64,000 nt of DNA from Klebsormidium nitens (GCA_000708835.1 DF237332.1:26461-90460), one strand, 5' to 3'. Counted from the stretch's first letter, positions 178 through 14,063 are shown. The notes: a model not told the origin generated them from the letters alone. Made by a program: numbers and translations.

Positions 178-3100
178 CTCGCGAGGTCGGATCTCGGGCG
201 GCGCACGGAGCGCCTCTCTTTTGACCAAGAACTGGTCCAGTCCGCCGTCCCAAGCCAGCCCCTCCTTGCTGTCCCGCACGGCTGAAACAAGAGGATTGGG
301 GGAAATGTCAAACGGCTCTAAATAATACCGACATGCTGAAAGCTTAGAACTGGGAGCAGATAAAACAGATTCAACGTTCTTGCGCAGAGGTGGCAGCCGG
401 ACCAGTCTTTCCTCCAACGATTCCGTCCATTAAGAAGTACCTACACGGCCAAAACGTCCAGATATCCGAACGCGGCAGGTTCATGATGTGCCTACGAGCT
501 CTATCGGGCGCCCGCTGCGTTTGCTTGTGCCTTCAGACTGACTTGTTGCGATTCACAATATGTAACCATCAGGAGTGGGACTATTCGCGAACGAGCGGAC
601 GGGGTACACGTCCAATTGCAATGGAAGCATTTGGTGCGCGAAATAAGGACAGGCCTGAGATGACAGGTTTCACTCCTACAATGCTTCGTCGTCACAAGCG
701 GAACGGAACGGAGCTTACCGAAACGGGATCCACCCGGAGCCGCGGCCTTGGTGGGGCTCTTCCTCTTGAGCCACGAGCTCATTCCCGAGAGCACGCCCTT
801 CCTTCTCGGCGACTTGCTCCCTTTCTCCACCACATCCATGGTCGCCATCTCCTCCCTGGCGACAGCCTTCCAATCTTCGGAGTAAAAGGCGACCTCAGCT
901 TCGCCCGCGCTCTCCTGCGAGCCAAAGTACTCGTCGGAGAAGGTCCGCTCCGGCGACCCGTACGCGCCTCCCTCCGCCTCCACGTCGCCGTCGGAGCCGC
1001 CCGGACCCCATGACGTCACAGCGGCGGCACCTTCTGTTAGCCCGAAGGCTTCCGAGGCCCTGTGAGGGGCTTGTACGTCGGTAGGAGAGCCTGAAATTGG
1101 TTTTGAAACGGGCGGCGAATCCACTTCCGGGGCCTCTTCCTCCTCCGTCATAAGCGCCCGGATCGCCGCCCACTCACTGTCGGTGCTGGCGGCCAGCAGG
1201 TCCTCTTCTCCCTCCTCTAGTTCGTCCTCCTGGAAACGGGGCTCGTAAGAACCTCGCGTCTCTCCCGCCTCTAGTTCGTCCGGACGGGACGACTTCACAC
1301 TGCCGTCCCCTTGGTCCGAGAACCCGGGCGTGTTTACACTCGTGGTCACAACGGATCGCCCTGTCTCCGACTTCAGCGCCTCGTTATCAACCTCGAGTGT
1401 GAATAAGCTCTCCGTCGACACCCCAGGGTCTGCCACGTGTCCCGGCTCAACGTGGGCTACCGCGTCTGACGTCATGTTAACGGCAGCAAGCTCGGGGGAC
1501 GGGTGCTTTTTGGGTGGGGAGTTGGTGGGGCCCTGTGGCACGGGTGACAGCGGGTCCTCATCGGCAAAATCGGGCATGTCCTGCTCCAACGGGGCCTCCA
1601 AACCGGCGCAGCTCGCAACCTGTAATGCGCAAAAAGTGGCCGTTGGATTCCCTATGGTTGCAAGAGTCTGTCGTGCATGGGCGGCAACACGGAATGCGCA
1701 GTTCCACATTTTGAAAGAGAAGAACGGACTTTGGTGATCTAAGTTCCTGAAGAAAAGCCTCTCTTCCAAAGTGCGGTGCTGAATTAACTCATTGTCAAAG
1801 CTTTTTATACTGGGCCCTACAGTTGCTTCCGTCGGAGACCGTCGTGAGACAGGGGCAGCGAACAAGAAGACACTCTACCAAAAGAACCGCTGAGAACCTC
1901 TGAGTATGTAGAGAGGCCCGGACAAGCTCTTTGTCTCCTTTGAACGGTGACACTTCTGCTGTATATGCAAGTTCCAGTAAAACTGTTTTGCTTTCACATT
2001 GCAAAATAGTAGCCTTCGCATGGAACGCGTTTCAAAAAAAAGAGACAGAGTCAACGGAATGTCTACTAGAAGCTGATTAGTTGAGGATGCCAGAAGGAAA
2101 AAATAGAAAGAAGGAAGAGGAAAATTACCAACAAGTTCGTGGATCACAGGTGTAGATCGCAGAAGGCTCCAAATCGATTGTCTCGCTTAGATACGGGTAC
2201 AATGGAGGCGGTATGCTTCATGTCAAACTGAAGCTCTCACCTCTGACCCCATGCTGTGACTCCGTTGCGTTTTGAGCGAGGCCTTCCGCTTGTTGAAGTC
2301 CCGGACCTTGGACTCCCAAAACCCTAAACCCTTGCTGCCGCCGGAGACTGCCGCCAGGCGCCGCGCGACCTCCTTCTGGTCGGATGGGGACAGTAGAACC
2401 GGCGCGCTCGCGTCAGCGGCGATGTCAGCGGGAGTGGCTGACGGGGCTGGCGGGATGTCGTCATCTGGGGCGTGGATAGGAGTGGTGACTCTGCAAAAAA
2501 AAAAAAAAAAAGATTCTGAGACAAGAAGCTCCAGAAGTGGGGATGCGGGCCTTGGCGTTGAGCATGTGAAAACATTTTGGAACTGCCTGGCACTGTTTGA
2601 GGATAAAGGAACAAAGAGAAGTCTGATAGTTGAACACTCCGATAGCAGAGTCGTCCATATTGGTTGTACAAGGGGCAAAGATTTTAAAGAAGAGAAGGAG
2701 CTGAGCGTGGCCTCGATGAAAGGATAGACAAAGGACTGATGTGCAAAAGTGACGTGGCTGATTGGCAGGAACTGACTAACAACAAATCGTCGGCTAACTT
2801 GCAAATTTCTACGATCAAAGCCCTTTGCAAGAGCAACCAGTAGGGAAGACAACTCTATCTCACGGCCGCCCCGATACGAGAAGCAAGAGTCTTACCTGTG
2901 CTGTCGCGACTTAAGCCGCTTCAACGGCGACTTCTTGGGAGCCTTCGCTGCGTCTTCCTCAGCCGAGACCCTAGAGACCACAACCGGAACGGGCTCCTCT
3001 GGCAAGTTTTCGCTCTCCTCCGCAGCAGCGAAAGCCCCAAAAGCTTGCAGCCCTTTCGGCCGCCAGTCTTCTTCCGGCCCCTCTTCCGCATAATCCTCTG

Positions 3101-5489
3101 CTTTAATCGGTTGGATATCCGAAGGGGCTTCAAGAACCGGCTCGTTTTCGGGGGCTTCGCTGACGGCACTGGGCTGGGGCGCGAGAGCTGGCGCCGACGA
3201 CCCGTCCGCTTCCGCCTGGGGGACCGGCTCGTCCTTGGCTGCCTCGCTGACGTCAACCCGAGCAGGTGCTGACGTCACGTCCGGCTCCTCGTCGCTCAGC
3301 TGCACCAGGCCCTCCGTCCACGCGGATGGCGCCGCTGTTGGACGGTACTCCGCGTCCGAACCTCGCCCCACCTTCTTGGACGAGAACATCCGGGCAAAGG
3401 GCGACCTCGCCCTGCCCTCCTTGTGCTTCTTGGTCGCCATCTCCGGTGCTTCATGGTCGGCCGCTTTCGGGACCGGTTCAGGCCGCTGGAAGGGCGACTT
3501 GGACCTGCCACGTGTTTTCACGACGGGGTTCAGAAGCGCGAGGTCCCCGCCAGGCAGGTGGCCCTTGACGAACAGCAGCTGCACGGCTGCCACGTGGTTC
3601 TGGTCCCTCATCATTGGGGGCTCTTCTTTCGGCCCCTTCTTCCCAAAGCGGGGCATGCGGAAGGGCGACTTTGAACGGGCGCGCTTGGATGCTTCGGCTG
3701 CTGGACCCTTGGTCCCCTCTGCCGTTTCTTCGTTGCCCCCCTCCAACAAGCGGACTTTCTTGTCAAACCCGTAGGTCTCCATCGGCTTTTGCACAGGTTC
3801 TGGGAGGTTAGCCGCTTCGGAACTAGGGGCGGGGACTGTTGGGTCAGAGCCGCCCTTGCTCTTGCCCCCAAACCGCAGCCGACTGAACGGCGACTTTGAT
3901 CTTTCCCGCTCGTTGACGCCGTCCCCTCCGCCTTGCTCTGCAGCCCGCTTTCCAAACCCGGGCATCCTGAAAGGGGACTTTGAGCGCGCCCGCTCCTCAT
4001 GTTCTCCACCTTTTTCTTGAGGCTTCCTGCCAAACAGGGGCGACTTGGACCGCGCCCGTTTCTCCATCTTCCCCTCCAAGTGCTCCTCCTCAGAAGGTGC
4101 CCTTCCCTTGAACGCCCGCCCAAACCCAGGGAATCGGAATGGGGACTTTGAGCGCTCCTTGGAGACTGCTGCCACCCCCTCCGCGCCTTCCCCGTCATGA
4201 CCGCCTGCTTCCCGCCCCCTGCCAAAGATGGCCATCTTGAACGGAGATCGAGCTCTACCCTTCTTTTCCTCTGCCGCCGCAGCAACATTGGTCTCGGCGC
4301 GAGTGTCAACGTTCTCCTTCTGCTTGCGATGGGCTTTCCTCTCCCTGTGACCCTTCTTGGACGCCTTTGGCTTGTTAGCTGCAACTTCTTGGGAACCTTC
4401 CTCCACCTCCCCAGCACAGGACGCAGGCACACCGCCCCCGCTGTTGAACTCAACGCTCCGAAAAGGGCGCCTTCCGGCCACGACCCCTGCGACCAGTTCC
4501 TCATCGGGACTGCCGACATCGGACGCCCCAGACAACTTCGTGACAGGGGGGCTAAATACTGCCGCCTTGGTGACATCACCTTGGCGCGCGGGGCTAGCCG
4601 GGACCTTGCCCTTCGCCTGTCGGTGCGGGTTGCTTTCTGTGCTCAAGCTCCCCTCCTTCAGCTGCGCAATCCCGCTGTCCCCATCCCCCTCTCCGTGCAC
4701 ATTCCCTCTATTTCTACCTGGCTTCGCAAACTGCCGGTCGCCAAGAGGCCCTGTCCTCAGGTTTGGTGGCGCGATGTCCACTGGACGCGCCAGGACAATC
4801 TGCTCACTCCGGGGCCTGCTCACTGGCATGGTGGAAACCTCCTCACAGACCTCCTCAATCGTCTCGTCCACCTTCATGAAGGAGAACGAAGAGTCGCTCG
4901 CGAAAGCGGGGTCCCGCTTCTTCGATCTCCGGTGCGGCCGCGCCTCGACAGACGTGTCGCTGCCGACCGCGCCCTCGGTCCGGAGCGCTCGCTGAGACGA
5001 CGTCTCGCCCTTCTCCCCCGTGTTGCTCCTCTCCAAACCGCCCCGCTCCCTGACCCTTTCTTCATGCGGCTGCTCAAAACTCGGCTCCTCCCCCAGAGAC
5101 CTTACGGAAAGCACTCTGCGCAATTCGCCGTTGTTTGGCTGCCGGATAAACTTGACAGAGTCGTCGCTGTCCGCGCCGCTCGACCCCTGGCGCAGCCTCG
5201 CAGCGCTGGCGCTCAGTTTTGCCGCACTCCTCGCCCGCCTGCTGGCGCTGCGGCTCCTCTCCAAGTCGCGCTCCCTGCCCCGCCCCTGCCGGCTGCTGCT
5301 CTCAAAGCTGGTGTCGCGCCCCTTCTGCTGCTCCCATTTGTAGGACTGCGTCCCCAAAGACGGACGCCAGCTGGACACAGACTCGTGCGTGGCGTCAGAG
5401 GAGACGTTGTCCGAAGACCCAGGGGCTGCGGGCTTCAGGGACTTGCGGCGGGAACCGCGTGAGCGTTTGGTGTTGCGGGGGGGAGGCAT
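178..5489 (-). CDS. Large, mostly disordered Ser/Glu/Lys/Arg-rich protein with repeated R-S-K-S-P-F motifs; 3' end runs off the window (possibly Raf-like/TKL kinase)
   Basis: Minus-strand exons 5489(ATG)-2896, 2490-2241, 1619-719 and 281-178 join with GT-AG borders in matching phases (2,0,1). A CAG acceptor at 5530-5529 adds 13 in-frame codons, so an upstream exon 6577-6512 (MEAPPGGSSMEEHVRHSHKPRK, donor AAG|GTAAG) may hold the true start. A possible 16-nt exon at 79-64 reads LTLGS. Confidence 0.75.
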
Positions 5490-7110: not shown

Positions 7111-7269
7111 TCCGCTCTAGTTCCCGGCTAGCTCAGCAGAGCAGGACAGTTGCAGAGTGCTCTTCTGCTCGAAAACGACGCCTGCTGCAAAGCTAGGAGG
7201 AAGGCACTCTTGAAGGCGCAGTGGAAGGCACAGACCTCGTTGGTCACTCGCCTGTTGCGCTTCTGAGAC

Positions 7270-10200
7270 ATGGCTTCCGTCCAGGAATGCAGGGGTGCTC
7301 TGGTGGGAGCTGGCCCTTTGACGGTGCTCGTGGTTGGCCCTGCTGGGGCTGGCAAGAGCTCCACTGTGAATGCGGTCTTCGGGAGACATTTCCTGGCGGC
7401 GAAGCCTGCTGAGGTAAGCAGTTTTGCTCAGAGCAATGTGGATTTTACTTGACCGAATGCAGCTTGCTCGTATTGTATTGCCAAAATGAGGCATTTGCAT
7501 CTCTTTTGGACTGTTTTCTGCTAAAGGTGGTTGGCTCCATGGTTGGCTGCACAGGGGCAAGCATTGGAGCAGGTTTGGGGACCCCTACTGTGCATAGCTT
7601 GTTATGATGCAGTTTTCAATGACCAAAGAGTATGGCACAGTTCCAGAAAAGCCGAATGCTCCAACGTATTTATATTAGCAGTCAATGCAACTCCAAGCGA
7701 CCATGCATGTTTTGCTTGTTGACCCAAGAGACAAGCATGTGGGTTCCCGCTTAGGTTTATTATCCTAGCCATTCGCTCACGGGTTTCCGTATTCAATCTG
7801 CTGTTTCTGATTCATGTCAGCATTACTTGCAAGAGTGGCTGTTTCAGAAGATGCAAATGCGCACATTCGTCTCCCTTCTTTGCAAAGCTAAGATAAACTT
7901 GGGTCGTTCTGCATTTGTCAAACATGGAATTTTTGCCATGATTGAGTCCGTGCGGCCCCTGGTAATGGTTGGAACAGGCGCCACCGATGCAAGCAATATT
8001 GAATCCATTCGTGCCAAAAATATTGACCGCAGTGCACTTGAGAGTGCCTGGTTGGGCTTTGCTTTTCTTATATTTGCTCCTTCCCGATCGAGTTGAAAGA
8101 ATATGCTTTTGTTGTAATTACTCCGGAGTAACTTCCTTCATGTGCCTGTCGGCTGCTTCTGTTGGTGGCTGTATTCAGGTAAATTGGGTGATGGATGCTC
8201 CAGTAGGCAGGATTTTGTACCACAACCTCATAAACCCTACGCAGAGCATCTCTGCCTTTCATACTTGAAAGCAAGGGGATAAATATGCACTTGCCAGCTT
8301 TTTGACTTCCTAGCATGCCATTGACCAATCTGAGAGGTGTTTGCTCAAGTAGTTGAGCTCCCGCATGCTGCTTGCAAAGCTTTTGTGTGCTTTCATCATC
8401 CAATAGTGTGGAAAATCAAGCGTTTTCTTGGTCCTTGTGAGCGGCATGCAGCCAGCTGTTGTTACCCATCCGTCGCAGGCTTCCGCCGGTCGCTTCAAGC
8501 TCGAGGAGTGCGTGCAGACCATCAATGGTTCCAAGGTCGTCGTGCTCGAGGCCTCTGGCCTGAGCAAGGCTAAGGATGTAGAGGAGCTCCGTAAGAGCCT
8601 GTCCAAGAAGCGGAAGACGGTGGACCTCGTGCTGCTCGTAGAGGCTCTGCAGCAGGCCGGCAGTGTGGATGTGGCCAGCGAGATGGGAGCCAAGTTTGGC
8701 GCGCAGCTGCTTAATGCTGCGGTGCCTGTCTTTGCCTGCGGCCACGTTCAGGTATGGTGCCACCCGTTGCGTCTATTTTCGCATGACAGAAATCAATATG
8801 TACACCAGTAATTGATTTTCAGATATGCTGCATGTCGTTGATCAAGCACTGACGGCTTGTGCAGCACTTGCATGCGCTGTCCATTTTGAGACTACAGGAC
8901 ATAGAAAGATTAAAGGCTGGTAGAAGTTTGAGAAAATGGAAAAGGAAAATGACTAGCAGGCGTCATGTATAAACTTGACGTCGGCTATGGTCAAGCCTGG
9001 CTTGTAGCATAGACCTTTATGAATGAAATTGCACAAGGGTAACGTGAACATGCTGAACGGCGCAGGCATTCACTTTTTGTTTTTTCTCAGGAGGAGGCCG
9101 ATGAAGAGAGCAAGGCTCTGTATGCCAAGCGCAGCGCTGCTGTTCTCGCTGCCTTCGGCGCAAACGGCGCTGAGGTGCCGTCCAGGGTCATTCCTCTGGA
9201 GCTGGAGGGTGCTTCAGTCTGCGAGGAGGGTTTGAAGGTGGTTCTGGAGGTGAGCTTTTGTAACTGTGAAGACTTCAATGTTAGGATGTTATATTCCACG
9301 CTTCCTGCTGCTGATATACTGGGACAGATTATTCTATTGTTCGAGCATTTGGCATCCTCTCTGAGCAGCGGTGTGACAACACAGAGCGCATATTAGCCTT
9401 GTCTTTTCAGCAGAAAGTCTAAGAAACGACTGACGCTCCGGTGTTGAGCAGGGGGTTTGGCAGATACGATGTTGTACCTCGCTGCCTATGTTGCACATCC
9501 AGGTGCATTTTGCTTGTCAAGCATACGGAGCATCCTGACTTGACTTTCTCATTTTTCCCTCTTCGTCAGGAGATGCGCCGCGTGCGCGCTCAGAAGACGC
9601 CAGCATTTGTCCCTGCCACCACTATGGACGCTGACCTCAAGGACCTGAGCCTGGTCATGGACCACAACATGTCGGTCGCCAGCTTCAATGCTGCCCCCGC
9701 GTTCCTGCCCAAGCAGGCGCCTGTGAAGGTGAGTTCTGGATGGTGGCATCTCCTTGGCACAGGATTTTGCAGAGATGTTGCGTGTGTCTGCTAGGATTTT
9801 GTTCTTGTGAGACAAGGTTCGGATGGTTTGACACAATGAGACTGCTAATAGAACCAGCATCTCGCCATCAAGCGCAGCAAAAGGGACCTCAAAATGGGCT
9901 CGTCGTCTTTGGATTGCGAAAGATATTTTTAGATATATCCCCAATTCTTTGAGCTATGTTCTCAGACTCAGTCCACATGCCCGGCGTTCGCTGTCTCTCA
10001 ACACTAACTCCAGGGTAAAGGAATCAGGTTTTCCTACCAGGCAACCGTCGCGCTGTTGAAAGTTTGTCAACAAGCCTGCTGACATTTTGCGGCTCTTAAC
10101 CCTGCCCCACATGAAGGGTTTTTAAAACAGGAAGCCTAAAACTGTTTTTTTCCTGTCCGATTATGTTTTCAGACTCCTTCCACAAATCATTCTTGCAACC

Positions 10201-13200
10201 ATCATCCTGACGCTTTGTATCTTCTCAAATTCAGGTCGTGCGCGCCCCCACTAAGGAGGCCGCCCCTGCGCCCCCCGCCAAGCTCGCGGAGGCAGCCCCC
10301 AAGGCCCCGGTGCAGCAGTCGTTCCCCGCGCCTCCGCCCAACGTCGCGGGCGCCGCCTCGATCTCAATCGCCGTGCAGTCGGCCGCGAGCATGCTCGCGC
10401 CTGCCTTGCAGGCTGCCGCAGCTACCCAGGTCAAGAAGCTGCGTAACCTCCGTGGGGGTGTCCCTATGATCGCCCCCCGGTCCCCAATCGACTGCCCCGC
10501 GATCAAGGTCACCAAGACGCTCGTGCCGGCGAGGGACGCGGCCGCGAGCAAGACGACCATGCTGTCGTCGGCGGCGAGCTCGTTCGCGCCCGTCGCGGCG
10601 GCTGTTTTGGCGCCGAGCAAGCCGGCGGCGAACAACAAGCTCATGGGGCTGTCGGCGTTCCCCGACATGCAGAAGCTGCGGGGGGGCGACTTCGCCGGGC
10701 CTGCGGGCGCGGCAGCGGCGCGCAACGTGTCCATTGTCTGGTTCAGGTGAGTCTTTGTCCGATTTGCTTGCAACTCAGCAGCCCCCTGGGCTCCCAGAGC
10801 GACAGCATGCATTGAAAGCCTGAGTACCTTTATGAGAGGGGTGCACCAGTTGGTGTATGAAATGGATTGCTCTTATACATAAGAAGAGCAAAGTTCCTAC
10901 GGGTTATGGATCTTTGTCAATCAGAAACCCTAATCGAAACTACTTCGGAAATCTGGTCAGGAGTATTCCTGATGAAGTCTACTCTCCTTTGACTACACTT
11001 TCGTGAATGAACTGTTTGTTGGCTCCATTTCAAAGACCAGGGCTTTGCATTCGATCTCAAACAGGCTTGACTACTCAGCTTCAATTGACCTTAGCGCTTT
11101 CCGCTTAAGTCCGCTACCCATTCTACGTAGACCTCTACACACACCATTGGTCTTCCAATCACAAGTTTCTCTAGTGATTGCAAGCCTTGAAACTTGGCAT
11201 GTGTCAAATCAGACGCCAATGCGATTTCAAGCTTTCAACTTTTGCTTGTGCCGTTTTACATGCTGATCAAATCTTTGTTTTTTTTGCAGGAACGACCTGC
11301 GCGTCCACGACAACGAGGCTTTGGCCATGGCTCAGCAGGCGTCGAGCTCCATCGTGCCGGTGTACTGCTTCGACCCCCGTGACTACGGCAAGTCTTCGAG
11401 CGGTTTCGACAAGACGGGGCCGTACCGGGCCAAGTTCCTCATCGAGTGCGTCGCAGACCTGCGCAAGAACCTGCGGGAGAGGGGCAGCGAGCTGGTTGTC
11501 AGGATCGGGAAGCCGGAGGAGGTGAGGTTCATCTGCAGACATTGCGTGCCTCTGATGTCAGTAGCATGCCCAGTATCATCTTCGGCCTGTGGCATCGTCT
11601 CGTGAAAAGGACGCTATGACAAGTAAGGGGAAGTTGAACTTAGCGAACGGCCAACTATGATTCTCAGAGGTTTCGCCTAAGTAACAGTACTTCGAGCCCC
11701 TAAGGCCGAGGCAAGTGAGCAGGAGGCAGGGTTTTATTAAGCATATGTGCAGCCAAGTGCGGAAAGGTTTCCTCGTCCAATCAACACCTCAGTAACTGAC
11801 TTTGCAGGTCCTGGCTGACCTGGCGCGCAAGACTGGCGCCAAGACGCTGTTTGCGCACCAGGAGGTGACGCACGAGGAACTGCAGTCGGAGCGCAAGGTG
11901 TGCGCGGCGCTCAAGGACGCGGGCGTGCAGGCCAAGTTCTTCTGGGGCAGCACGCTGTACCACATCGACGACCTGCCCTTCAAGCTGGAGAGCATGCCCT
12001 CCAATTACGCCGGCTTCAGGGAGCAGGTGCGAGGCTCGTCGTTTTTTTTTTTAAATGCTAAATCTATAGGACCACAGTTCCTTTGCATGTTTCGGTTTCG
12101 CTGTTCAGCTTTCTTCGGGCGTTGTTTGGTAAGAAGGTGCCTCCCAACTACGCCGCCTTCAGGGAACAGTTGCGGGGCATTGTTATGTACATTCTGCGGA
12201 GGCTCCCAGCATCTATCTGGTACTGAGTGTTCGAAGCTTCATTGTCCTTTGCCCCTGGCTACTGACGAATCATCTTTGATGATATAATGACCGCTGCATC
12301 AGCGAGAATTTGCTACGTTTCCGAGCGTCGCACCTGCTACGTATCTGAGCGTGTCTGGACTCTGGGGCATCGCATCCTTGTAACCTCGTGCCACTGGCAC
12401 TAGCATCAAACAGCCAAGTTGTGCAGCTTAACGTTGGGTAAACGGGCCACTTTGCGATCGTGAGTCTTCTGGTTGTTCAGCCAACCCTGCAGCAATTGTG
12501 GCAACCAGCCTTACGCCCAATCTCTGTGCTCAGGTGAAGGACCTGAAGGTGCGCAAGACCGCGGCCGCGCTCAAGACGCTCAAGGGCCTGCCGAAGCTGA
12601 GCAGCGTCGAGGTCGGGAAGGTGCCTACCCTGCAGGACCTCGGCCTAGACGCCTCAAAGTCCACCCGGCATGTAAGCGAAGTCACTCGCTTTGGCTCCTT
12701 TCATTGAGACGGATCTCAATCACTGTCATTGGAATTTCTGAGCAACCGAGGTCGTCGGTTGGGTGGGTGTCATGGGGAAAATGTCCCCAAGTCAAGGAAA
12801 CGACTGAGCACTGAAGAGCACTGAAGCATTGAAGAGCTATCGCAAGTAGGTGCGTTTGTTGTCTGGAGGCGTCCTTGTGGAGTATTTCTTGCTCCGCACT
12901 CTTCGGTGCATGCATTTATAGTTCATCAGAACCTTGGGGCTGGGTATGTGGTAGGTTGAGATCTTTACTTTTGATGCGCTGCATGATGTCATTCAAAAAG
13001 GGTCGTCCCTAACTTTTAACTTCAATCTGTACAGGAGACTGGAGCCCAGGCCCTGATTGGAGGAGAGTCGGAGGCCCTCGACAGGCTTAAGAGCTTTGTA
13101 GCGGATGCAACCGGTGAGTTTCTGAAGTAGCTGCCCGCCTCTTCCTTTCAGGAAATGAGGGGTGATATCTGCACTCTGGCAAAGGAGCTGTCTTCAAATA

Positions 13201-14063
13201 ATTGCTTTTGGAATCAATCTGGCTCCCCTGGAGTGAAAGATTGCGCAGCATCCGTCTTCGCTTGAAGAAACCCTCTGGAGGAGAAACTGTTCGAGCTCCT
13301 TCTATGTTTGTTCTGCTGTCGTCGGCAAAAGTCAATCTTGTGACCTCACGTTTGTCCAACTACCTCTTTATGTCTTGACGATTTGTCCTGATCCGTCTTA
13401 AGTCGTCCTCGTTTTTGCAAGCATTCTCGAAAGCTGCCGTTCCGTCGCACGAGTTGTATCTGATCCAGTCCCGGTCTTTTCTCCTTGCAGCCGGCGCCAA
13501 GAAGGCCGCCGACAACCTGAACGGCGCCAACTTCTCGTGCAAGATCTCGCCCTGGCTGGCGATGGGCTGCCTGTCTCCCCGCCGCATGTATGAGGACCTG
13601 GCCGCCAGCGGGGGCGCCCGGGCCATCACCGCCACGGCGCAAAAGTCGCCCTCGGAGGATGCGAACGGCCTCAGCTGGCTGACGTTCGAGCTGCTGTGGA
13701 GGGACTTCTTCAGGTAGGGGCGCTTATCTGAGTGGCCGACCGCTTGGAACGGCTCGATCTGTCGTTAATAGACTCGGGGATCTCCTTTTTAAGGAGCTGT
13801 CGTTTCAGAAGATGTCTTTAGAGCTCTCGTTCATCAGCTTGCTTCACTCTGCTAACCAAATTCTATTTGCAAGGGGGGGCAGAGTAGGTTAGTTGAAGCA
13901 TGTGATGGCGTGCGAGTCTCGCCCCTTTCTGATGCAAACTAAAACTGGCTTCTGACATGTAAGTCGGATTCTGCCCAGGTTCATCACCAAGAAGTATGGC
14001 ACTGCCAACAAGAGTGCAAGCACCGCAGCATCCCCCGCTTCCGCTATGGCTGTCGCTGTCTAG
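7270..14063 (+). CDS. PHR2: Toc34-like degenerate GTPase domain fused to blue-light photoreceptor/photolyase-family protein PHR2 (749 aa)
   Basis: Exons 7270-7413, 8452-8751, 9091-9249, 9570-9728, 10235-10746, 11290-11521, 11808-12026, 12534-12671, 13035-13113, 13491-13713 and 13979-14063 total 2250 nt with no internal stop, and all phases match. An in-frame TGA sits just upstream of ATG 7270. PHR2 signatures: SIVWFRNDLRVHDNE, PVYCFDPRDYGKSSSGFDKTGPYRAKFL, FFWGSTLYHIDDLPF, GANFSCKISPWLAMG, WLTFELLWRDFFRFITKKY. The N-terminus has GPAGAGKSSTVN, TVDLVLLV and YAKRSAAVL, resembling Toc33/34. Confidence 0.85.
12137..12174 (+). repeat. Intronic decayed copy of the 3' end of PHR2 exon 7
   Basis: GTGCCTCCCAACTACGCCGCCTTCAGGGAACAGTTGCG against exon-end ATGCCCTCCAATTACGCCGGCTTCAGGGAGCAG|GTGCG (11994-12031). 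The donor GT has become TT in the copy. Confidence 0.8.

Follow-up and report, generated by a model that had tools for sequence, protein, structure and literature searches.

Introduction

PHR2 (also known as PPL, and as GERALT in Arabidopsis, At2g47590) is a plant-wide branch of the cryptochrome/photolyase family (CPF) whose molecular function is obscure, and whose land-plant members act in chloroplasts and have no recognisable transit peptide. Arabidopsis PHR2/GERALT is found in the stroma, has no predicted transit peptide, and its loss results in albino cotyledons and a defect in chloroplast biogenesis (10.1101/2024.08.16.608208), while ZmPHR2 of maize acts with ISP in chloroplasts (PMC13626285). 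A truncated flavin adenine dinucleotide (FAD) domain is typical of PHR2 (PMC4564169), and three motifs are specific to PPL proteins, namely ppl1 (ESxSxxPVYCFDPR), ppl2 (..YGANFSCKI) and ppl3 (FFRFxTxK) (Deppisch et al., 2022, PMC9498864). Here we analyze a gene of the alga Klebsormidium nitens, at positions 7270 to 14063 (+ strand) of a 64,000-nucleotide stretch of its genome (GCA_000708835.1 DF237332.1:26461-90460; 'the window', from whose first letter all positions are counted), in which a PHR2 module is joined to an N-terminal domain resembling the small GTPase receptors Toc33 and Toc34 of the translocon at the outer chloroplast envelope (TOC).

The two halves of the protein each have well described relatives. 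Over its C-terminal 330 residues, the protein shows 55-64% identity to land-plant PHR2 and shares with it the alpha/beta domain, the truncated FAD domain and the PVYCFDPR, GANFSCKI and FFRFITKK motifs; in addition, three motifs of the land-plant N-terminal extension are also present in the linker of the K. nitens protein. However, land-plant PHR2 proteins have only 440-590 amino acids (aa), start at or just before the first of these motifs, and have no G domain. The nearest solved structure for the C-terminal part is a CRY-DASH protein (Arabidopsis cry3, PDB 2j4d), but the K. nitens protein stops at the equivalent of position ~342 in a cry3 chain of 525 residues and, like all PHR2, lacks the greater part of the FAD/catalytic domain. 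Residues 15-205 find their best match, in both sequence and fold, in Toc33/Toc34, with which they share the P-loop (GxxGxGKSS-TVN), the order of strands, an Asp after strand beta5 and the final helix. Unlike Toc33/Toc34, the domain has no C-terminal anchor, spans about 190 rather than about 250 residues, carries E-A-S-G in place of D-T-P-G, lacks R130/R133, retains THAQ only in part (CGHVQ), and is followed by 530 further residues. Members of the Toc159 family (Toc159/132/120/90) are also multi-domain proteins with an AIG1-type G domain (Toc120/90 at 1.3e-9 in a profile search). They are weaker matches than Toc33/34, and their G domain is flanked by acidic (A) and membrane (M) domains, whereas the fusion contains neither the A domain nor PF11886 (TOC159_MAD). 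GIMAP/IAN (AIG1) GTPases belong to the same Pfam family (PF04548) and provide second-tier matches in sequence and fold, but score about eight orders of magnitude worse than Toc33 against the profile, and no member of the group is joined to a photolyase domain.

Results

Both domains are encoded by a single spliced gene

We rebuilt the gene from the genomic sequence as 11 exons on the + strand, with compatible phases, GT..AG introns in every case and one open reading frame (ORF), in agreement with the original prediction. The coding sequence of 2223 nucleotides (nt) specifies 740 aa followed by a TAG stop, and not 749 aa as first counted. Its translation is identical at every residue to a deposited protein of 740 aa (GAQ87857.1 / A0A1Y1IGL6, 'photolyase/cryptochrome [Klebsormidium nitens]', here P0009). 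The features of the gene are as follows.

7264..7266, + strand: in-frame TGA, two codons 5' of the ATG
7270..7413, + strand: exon 1, aa 1-48; start codon, strand beta1 and P-loop GPAGAGKS (aa 23-30, nt 7336-7359); AIG1 match at 6e-5 with this exon alone
8479..8751, + strand: exon 2, aa 49-139; core of the G domain, with E72-A-S-G75 (nt 8548-8559) for the Toc34 DTPG and CGHVQ for the Toc34 THAQ
9091..9249, + strand: exon 3, aa 140-192; invariant D143, helix alpha4, strand beta6 and the beginning of the last G-domain helix
9570..9728, + strand: exon 4, aa 193-245; end of the last G-domain helix (about aa 200-205, nt ~9608), then motif 1 (aa ~214-230, nt 9633-9683)
9657-9659, + strand: Met222, in exon 4, aligned with the initiator Met of several land-plant PHR2 proteins
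10235..10746, + strand: exon 5, aa 246-416; Ala/Pro/Lys-rich linker, predicted disordered, with motif 2 (ASISIAVQS, nt ~10346-10399) and motif 3 (LSAFPDMQKL, nt ~10646-10684)
from nt ~10724, + strand: first strand of the photolyase alpha/beta domain, in exon 5
11290..11521 and 11808..12026, + strand: exons 6 and 7; DNA_photolyase alpha/beta domain (PF00875; 7.7e-23 and 1.1e-11)
12534..12671, 13035..13113, 13491..13713 and 13979..14063, + strand: exons 8, 9, 10 and 11; inter-domain region and the start of the truncated FAD-binding domain, with PPL motifs GANFSCKI and FFRFITKK
14061-14063, + strand: stop codon TAG, in exon 11

The protein starts only about 16 residues ahead of the first strand of the G domain, and no transit peptide precedes that domain. 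Since an in-frame TGA lies two codons before the ATG, no N-terminal extension, such as a transit peptide, is possible in exon 1.

We then compared the model with assembled RNA contigs. Joints 8751>9091, 9249>9570, 9728>10235, 10746>11290, 11521>11808, 12026>12534 and 12671>13035 were present in spliced contigs from runs X1, X9, X10 and X14, which belong to four studies, and joint 7413>8479 was seen in two runs only (X9 and X10). The pieces listed for a contig of 2042 nt (X9, record 11) begin at 7225 and take in exons 1, 2, 3, 5 and 6, and exon 4 is placed in this contig by the 9249>9570 and 9728>10235 joints, found at the same depth as the contig; another (X14, record 10) covers exon 2 through exon 8. 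Because the joints from exon 1 to exon 9 were seen, and one contig contains exons 1-6, exons 1-9 are one transcript of one gene. The RNA comparison covered a 6-kb stretch, with the exon 9-11 junctions outside it. For exons 9-11, support is indirect and comes from the public annotation and from gap-free collinearity with an mRNA-derived ortholog (P0002/L002), in which 315/331 residues are identical over residues 410-740. No alternative joints were listed among the contigs of the four runs, although contigs are a weak test for these.

These data bear on the possibility that two adjacent genes had been misread as one, with a small GTPase encoded by exons 1-3 and a PHR2 with its own start and transit peptide. 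Exon 4 does contain Met codons (M194, M211 and M222), land-plant PHR2 begins at the equivalent of Met222, and the composition of the linker is like that of a green-algal transit peptide. Nevertheless, the joints on either side of exon 4 were found in all four RNA runs, single contigs span exons 1-6 and exons 2-8, and mRNA contigs of other sources (L001, L002 and L003, described below), as well as a K. subtile transcript, contain the ORF in the same unbroken form. Moreover, the last helix of the G domain (residues 184-200 in AlphaFold2 (AF2) models) crosses the exon 3/4 junction. As far as the major transcript is concerned, the RNA joints in effect refute a pair of genes, and we consider it extremely improbable overall. 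Exons 1-3 are thus not separate from PHR2, as originally predicted. The proposed layout, with the G domain in exons 1-3 and the linker in exons 4-5, was correct in outline, except that the last G-domain helix runs into exon 4. As the final stretch of the G domain and motif 1 are both found in exon 4, the seam between the two halves lies inside one exon.

The N-terminal domain is related to Toc33 and Toc34

Residues ~15-205 form a compact, predicted G domain of the AIG1 family (PF04548) at the extreme N-terminus of the protein. When Pfam was searched exon by exon, only the exon with the P-loop showed a weak AIG1 match and exons 2-5 showed none, the domain being recognised with full-length database proteins. 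The profile scored 42.2 bits (cut-off 27) on residues 1-250 of P0009, with an E-value of 7.3e-11, matching profile positions 1-131 of 212 only, and all six fusion N-domains in our set matched AIG1. A phmmer search of the PDB with residues 1-250 gave pea Toc34 (9e-7) and Arabidopsis Toc33 first, and GIMAP5 at 3e-3. With a profile built from the six N-domains, the matches were Arabidopsis Toc33 (atToc33, 1.3e-19), pea Toc34 (psToc34, 2.5e-17), Chlamydomonas Toc34 (2.2e-13), GIMAP5 (3.7e-11) and Toc120/90 (1.3e-9).

Structure prediction led to the same relatives. The AF2 model of residues 1-250 had a predicted local distance difference test score (pLDDT) of 77.7 and a predicted template modelling score (pTM) of 0.78. 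The 14 best Foldseek matches of this model in the PDB were Toc34/Toc33 structures (E ~1e-9, template modelling (TM) score ~0.6), as were the best three in the Swiss-Prot AFDB, and the best structural match in the Atlas was a 'Toc34-like' cluster (TM 0.71). Sequence profiles and predicted fold therefore support the designation 'Toc34-type G domain' as a statement of ancestry and fold.

The nucleotide-binding signature GxxxxGK[ST] is present as the P-loop at aa 23-30. Across the six N-domains, which are only 26-30% identical overall, G23, G26, G28, K29, E72, G75 and D143 are invariant; D143 lies after strand beta5 and aligns with the Asp of the 'PPD' sequence of Toc33/34. The D-T-P-G of switch II (G3) is replaced by E-C-E-G in Mesostigma and by E-A-S-G in the other five fusions of the set (K. 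nitens, Chara, the Klebsormidium-like metatranscriptome contig and two transcript contigs), so that the Glu and Gly of this E-x-x-G are invariant. Between K. nitens and the metatranscriptome Klebsormidium, the ratio of nonsynonymous to synonymous substitution rates (dN/dS) was lowest in PHR2 (0.065), followed by motif 1 (0.11), the G domain (0.17) and the linker (0.18).

Could the domain be a decaying, functionless remnant, that is, a dead pseudo-GTPase? Replacement of the G3 Asp by Glu, a G4 THAQ that is not conserved, a length shorter than that of Toc34 (reflected in the partial AIG1 match) and loss of the domain in land plants would all be in keeping with decay. A dN/dS of 0.17, the invariance of the P-loop, E-x-x-G and D143 across six lineages so divergent in sequence, and a confidently predicted fold argue against it, and we find a remnant very unlikely. 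Judged from its pattern of conservation, the domain looks like a maintained nucleotide-binding module with altered catalysis, and not a relic.

The C-terminal module and the linker

DNA_photolyase (PF00875) matched exon 6 at 7.7e-23 and exon 7 at 1.1e-11, and the near-ortholog P0002 at 2.7e-45, so that both profiles named as a check in the original prediction, AIG1/Toc34 and DNA_photolyase, are matched by the K. nitens protein. The last ~330 residues match bryophyte and seed-plant PHR2 with E-values of 1e-123 or better, and all three PPL motifs are found, as ASSSIVPVYCFDPR, NLNGANFSCKI and FFRFITKK, with one flanking mismatch each in ppl1 and ppl2. By sequence, the C-terminal part is an ortholog of land-plant PHR2/GERALT. 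Its alignment with cry3 covers residues 38-341 of that chain (E 1.5e-68 to 2.9e-74 for CRY-DASH structures), whereupon the protein ends and most of the FAD-binding domain is missing. No second PHR2 from K. nitens, Chara or Mesostigma was found among the best 120 matches.

The linker between the two domains is about 200 residues long, and residues ~232-398 are predicted to be disordered (pLDDT 30-45 in the full-length AF2 model). It contains 26% Ala, 13.5% Pro and 3.6% Asp+Glu, with a net charge of +13, a composition that resembles a green-algal transit peptide, yet in an internal position. Three conserved motifs lie within it, and all of them recur in land-plant PHR2.

Motif 1: [DE]-L-x-L-[IVL]-M-D-x-N (D-L-x-L-V-M-D-x-N in K. 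nitens)
Motif 2: A-S-[LI]-S-[LI]-A
Motif 3: S-A-F-P-D-[YFM]-x-[KR]-L

Motif 2 (ASISIAVQSAASMLAPAL) is the sole semi-hydrophobic stretch after the G domain and, by eye, is too weak for a membrane helix. The original prediction gave land-plant PHR2 an N-terminal extension only. These proteins, which begin 0-10 residues before motif 1 and thus at the very point where the G domain stops, indeed have no G domain, and their extension proves to carry the three motifs of the algal linker. The initiator Met of PHR2 from Sphagnum, Prunus and many seed plants aligns with Met222 of K. nitens.

Distribution of the fusion in streptophytes

The same architecture was found in further streptophyte algae, where the original prediction had suggested looking for it. 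These are K. subtile (741 aa, transcriptome), a Klebsormidium-like metatranscriptome contig of the Joint Genome Institute (JGI) that is 86% identical (P0002/L002), Chara braunii (GBG83833.1, 820 aa) and Mesostigma viride (Mv16955, 725 aa, with PF00875 and PF04548 precomputed), in addition to two transcript contigs, L001 (ERR12684111), whose ORF includes the P-loop and is open to the 5' end, and L003 (ERR2041121, 754 aa), whose run falls in the accession range of 1KP. An exhaustive phmmer search with exon 2 alone recovered four representatives, and missed Mesostigma and two transcript contigs that were later found by a full-length profile search, so that exon 2 alone gives too narrow a distribution. 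A word-indexed search with the N-terminal region missed Chara, showing its limited sensitivity.

The beginning of L001 deserves comment. This Logan contig opens (L001:1-60) with letters that translate as VQTCALPI, as Illumina adapter read-through would, and the sole upstream ATG is out of frame with the P-loop ORF. Because of this adapter-like start and out-of-frame ATG, the true 5' end and start codon of the L001 ortholog are not captured in the contig, and the internal Met at which the corresponding database protein (P0052, 702 aa) begins is an artificial start.

In a tree of the PHR2 domain, which is unrooted and has long branches, embryophytes formed one clade (support 92/94) with the algae outside. 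L003 grouped with Chara, and L001 with P0135 (100/97), a transcript from EukProt (557 aa) without a G domain; L001 is placed near Spirogloea in this tree. P0135 starts just before motif 1, as land-plant proteins do, and a second algal PHR2 model without a G domain is P0054 of Spirogloea muscicola (435 aa). Either the G domain has been lost more than once, or these models are incomplete. A model from Adiantum nelumboides (P0028, 951 aa) combines PHR2 with a reverse-transcriptase domain (PF00078), and is most likely an annotation merger with a retroelement.

Taken together, these comparisons make it very probable that the fusion is the ancestral architecture of streptophyte PHR2, and that the land-plant protein is the same protein minus its G domain. 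Since the N-domains share the derived E-x-x-G, and range from Mesostigma, on the deepest streptophyte branch, to Chara, one ancient fusion, with the G domain lost later in embryophytes and some algae, appears far likelier than repeated gains, and we hold this with high confidence.

Other features of the locus

Several further features of the window were recorded. In intron 7, 12138..12178 (+ strand) is a 41-nt copy, 83% identical, of the last 32 nt of exon 7 with its donor site (11995-12035). The copy is found 143 nt downstream and has TT for the GT of the donor; it looks like a boundary of exon and intron that underwent a small tandem duplication and was inactivated. Upstream of the start codon, one X1 contig matches from ~7183 onward and is preceded by 30 unmatched letters loosely like the local sequence. 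They could derive from an allele or a paralog, or from the chimeric end of a contig; the sequence at ~7183 has no AG acceptor. In intron 5, contigs of X1 and X14 match ~40 nt only (10861-10900) and are otherwise flanked by unrelated sequence (146-255 loose letters), suggesting a short repeat or an element common to another expressed locus. Further upstream, two open frames lie on the opposite strand, at 2895-5489 (- strand, 865 aa from its ATG) and 504-1865 (- strand, 454 aa). They are GC-rich, the surrounding GC content being 0.61-0.66 vs ~0.5 in the PHR2 gene, and neither showed a Pfam match at E<=0.001.

Discussion

The explanation that we find slightly better than evenly supported as a whole is that of a single fusion gene, ancestral in streptophytes, with a working nucleotide-binding G-like domain and possibly a partner at the TOC complex or the envelope. 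The individual steps differ in strength. That the G-like domain is a working module is suggested by the invariance of the P-loop Gly and Lys, of E-x-x-G and of the Asp after beta5, along with the dN/dS of 0.17. Given that the arginine finger of Toc33/34 is absent, it may be a binding switch that hydrolyses slowly or not at all, and not a fast GTPase, and for this step we see the chances as even. Toc-type GTPases tend to pair through their G domains. Because the domain appears to descend from Toc33/34, the class pairs in this manner and land-plant PHR2 works in chloroplasts, we tentatively suggest a TOC GTPase, or the chloroplast surface or envelope, as a possible partner, an interaction that might tether PHR2 to the import apparatus or regulate its delivery. 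On Rosetta-stone logic, PHR2/GERALT and Toc33/34 of land plants would be expected to be functionally linked.

For the functions put forward in the original prediction, which would be docking at TOC, coupling of light or flavin status to import, or a decoy, the evidence is mixed, and a number of observations weigh against our explanation too. The arginine finger used in the Toc33/34 homodimer (Toc33 R130 / Toc34 R133) appears to be absent from all six fusions. Its position, read off alignments by hand, is occupied by Q in K. nitens, D in Chara and Mesostigma and L in L003, and is apparently not Arg in L001; R130A is, from the title of PDB entry 3def, a dimerisation-deficient mutant of Toc33. 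The Asp of G3 is replaced by Glu, and the G4 region reads C-G-H-V-Q in K. nitens and T-H-T-E in Mesostigma for THAQ and differs in other fusions. No membrane anchor follows the G domain, which leads into a predicted disordered linker and then PHR2. Nucleotide binding, dimerisation and TOC contact are hypothetical. The full-length AF2 model (pTM 0.47) offers no confident arrangement of the G domain relative to PHR2, and a protein bound for the stroma would not readily be expected to begin with a folded domain that no transit peptide precedes. Furthermore, PHR2 of Chrysanthemum is reported to be nuclear. A role as 'blue/UV-A sensor' is doubtful because most of the FAD-binding domain is absent. 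With regard to its history, the PHR2-domain tree is unrooted and two sources of the fusion (L001 and L003) are known by run accession only.

Some of these points would fit a Toc34-derived paralog with no present role at the TOC complex, in which the G-like domain acts on PHR2 in the cytosol or nucleus, as a nucleotide-dependent module for its oligomerisation or regulation, much as GIMAP/AIG1 proteins act outside import. The missing arginine finger and membrane anchor, the rank of GIMAP and IAN proteins as next-best matches, the nuclear PHR2 of Chrysanthemum and the lack of an N-terminal transit peptide are compatible with such a module. Against this, the profile search separates Toc33/34 from GIMAPs by about eight orders of magnitude in favour of the former, and the Arabidopsis and maize proteins are chloroplast proteins; we regard a TOC-independent module as possible, though on the unlikely side.

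Alternatively, the G domain and linker together may act as a long removable targeting region, leaving the PHR2 module alone in the stroma after cleavage or after initiation at Met222, with a mature form equal to that of land plants. The Ala- and Pro-rich, poorly acidic and positively charged linker, the alignment of Met222 with the land-plant initiator Met and the stromal location of GERALT speak for this. However, purifying selection on the G domain and retention of residues of the nucleotide pocket from Mesostigma to Chara would be unexpected for a throw-away presequence, and no alternative joints or starts were seen in the RNA contigs, itself a weak test. We consider a removable region distinctly improbable.

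A stronger version of our preferred explanation, that of a nucleotide-binding fusion with a TOC or envelope partner, can also be framed. Ancestral PHR2 might have been a peripheral regulator associated with TOC, whose anchor-less Toc34-like domain paired in a nucleotide-dependent manner with the G domains of Toc34/Toc159, and so coupled the state of the photolyase module (antenna pterin, flavin or light) to chloroplast protein import and biogenesis. We offer this proposal as an improbable one. If true, loss of the G domain in land plants would have split two functions, and GERALT/PHR2 and Toc33/34 would still act in one pathway. The geralt mutant and the toc33 mutant ppi1 are alike in their pale young tissue.

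As to novelty, the original prediction knew of no described fusion. Among the papers that our literature search listed, likewise none describes a Toc34-like/PHR2 fusion, no paper in the library searched brings AIG1, photolyase and fusion together, and the large CPF survey (PMC9498864) mentions neither 'GTPase' nor 'Klebsormidium'. Yet the raw architecture is not new to databases, where the K. nitens protein is deposited with both PF00875 and PF04548 precomputed. It had been said that a fusion already annotated and widespread would speak against the prediction; in part this is so, as it is annotated and is found in Chara, Mesostigma, K. subtile and three transcript contigs. What is apparently new, as far as can be told, is the fusion as the ancestral form of streptophyte PHR2, and the land-plant N-terminal extension as its remnant.

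The presence in algal PHR2 orthologs of a conserved Toc33/34-type domain under selection, and the land-plant extension as its probable residue, bear on the gap in our understanding of PHR2 function, and raise the hypothesis that PHR2 is linked, functionally or physically, to the TOC GTPases or to the chloroplast envelope. Should the G domain have no connection to TOC, the fusion would still be a new domain architecture for both families, though of narrower interest. In either event, it would offer a clear instance of a domain lost as land plants arose.

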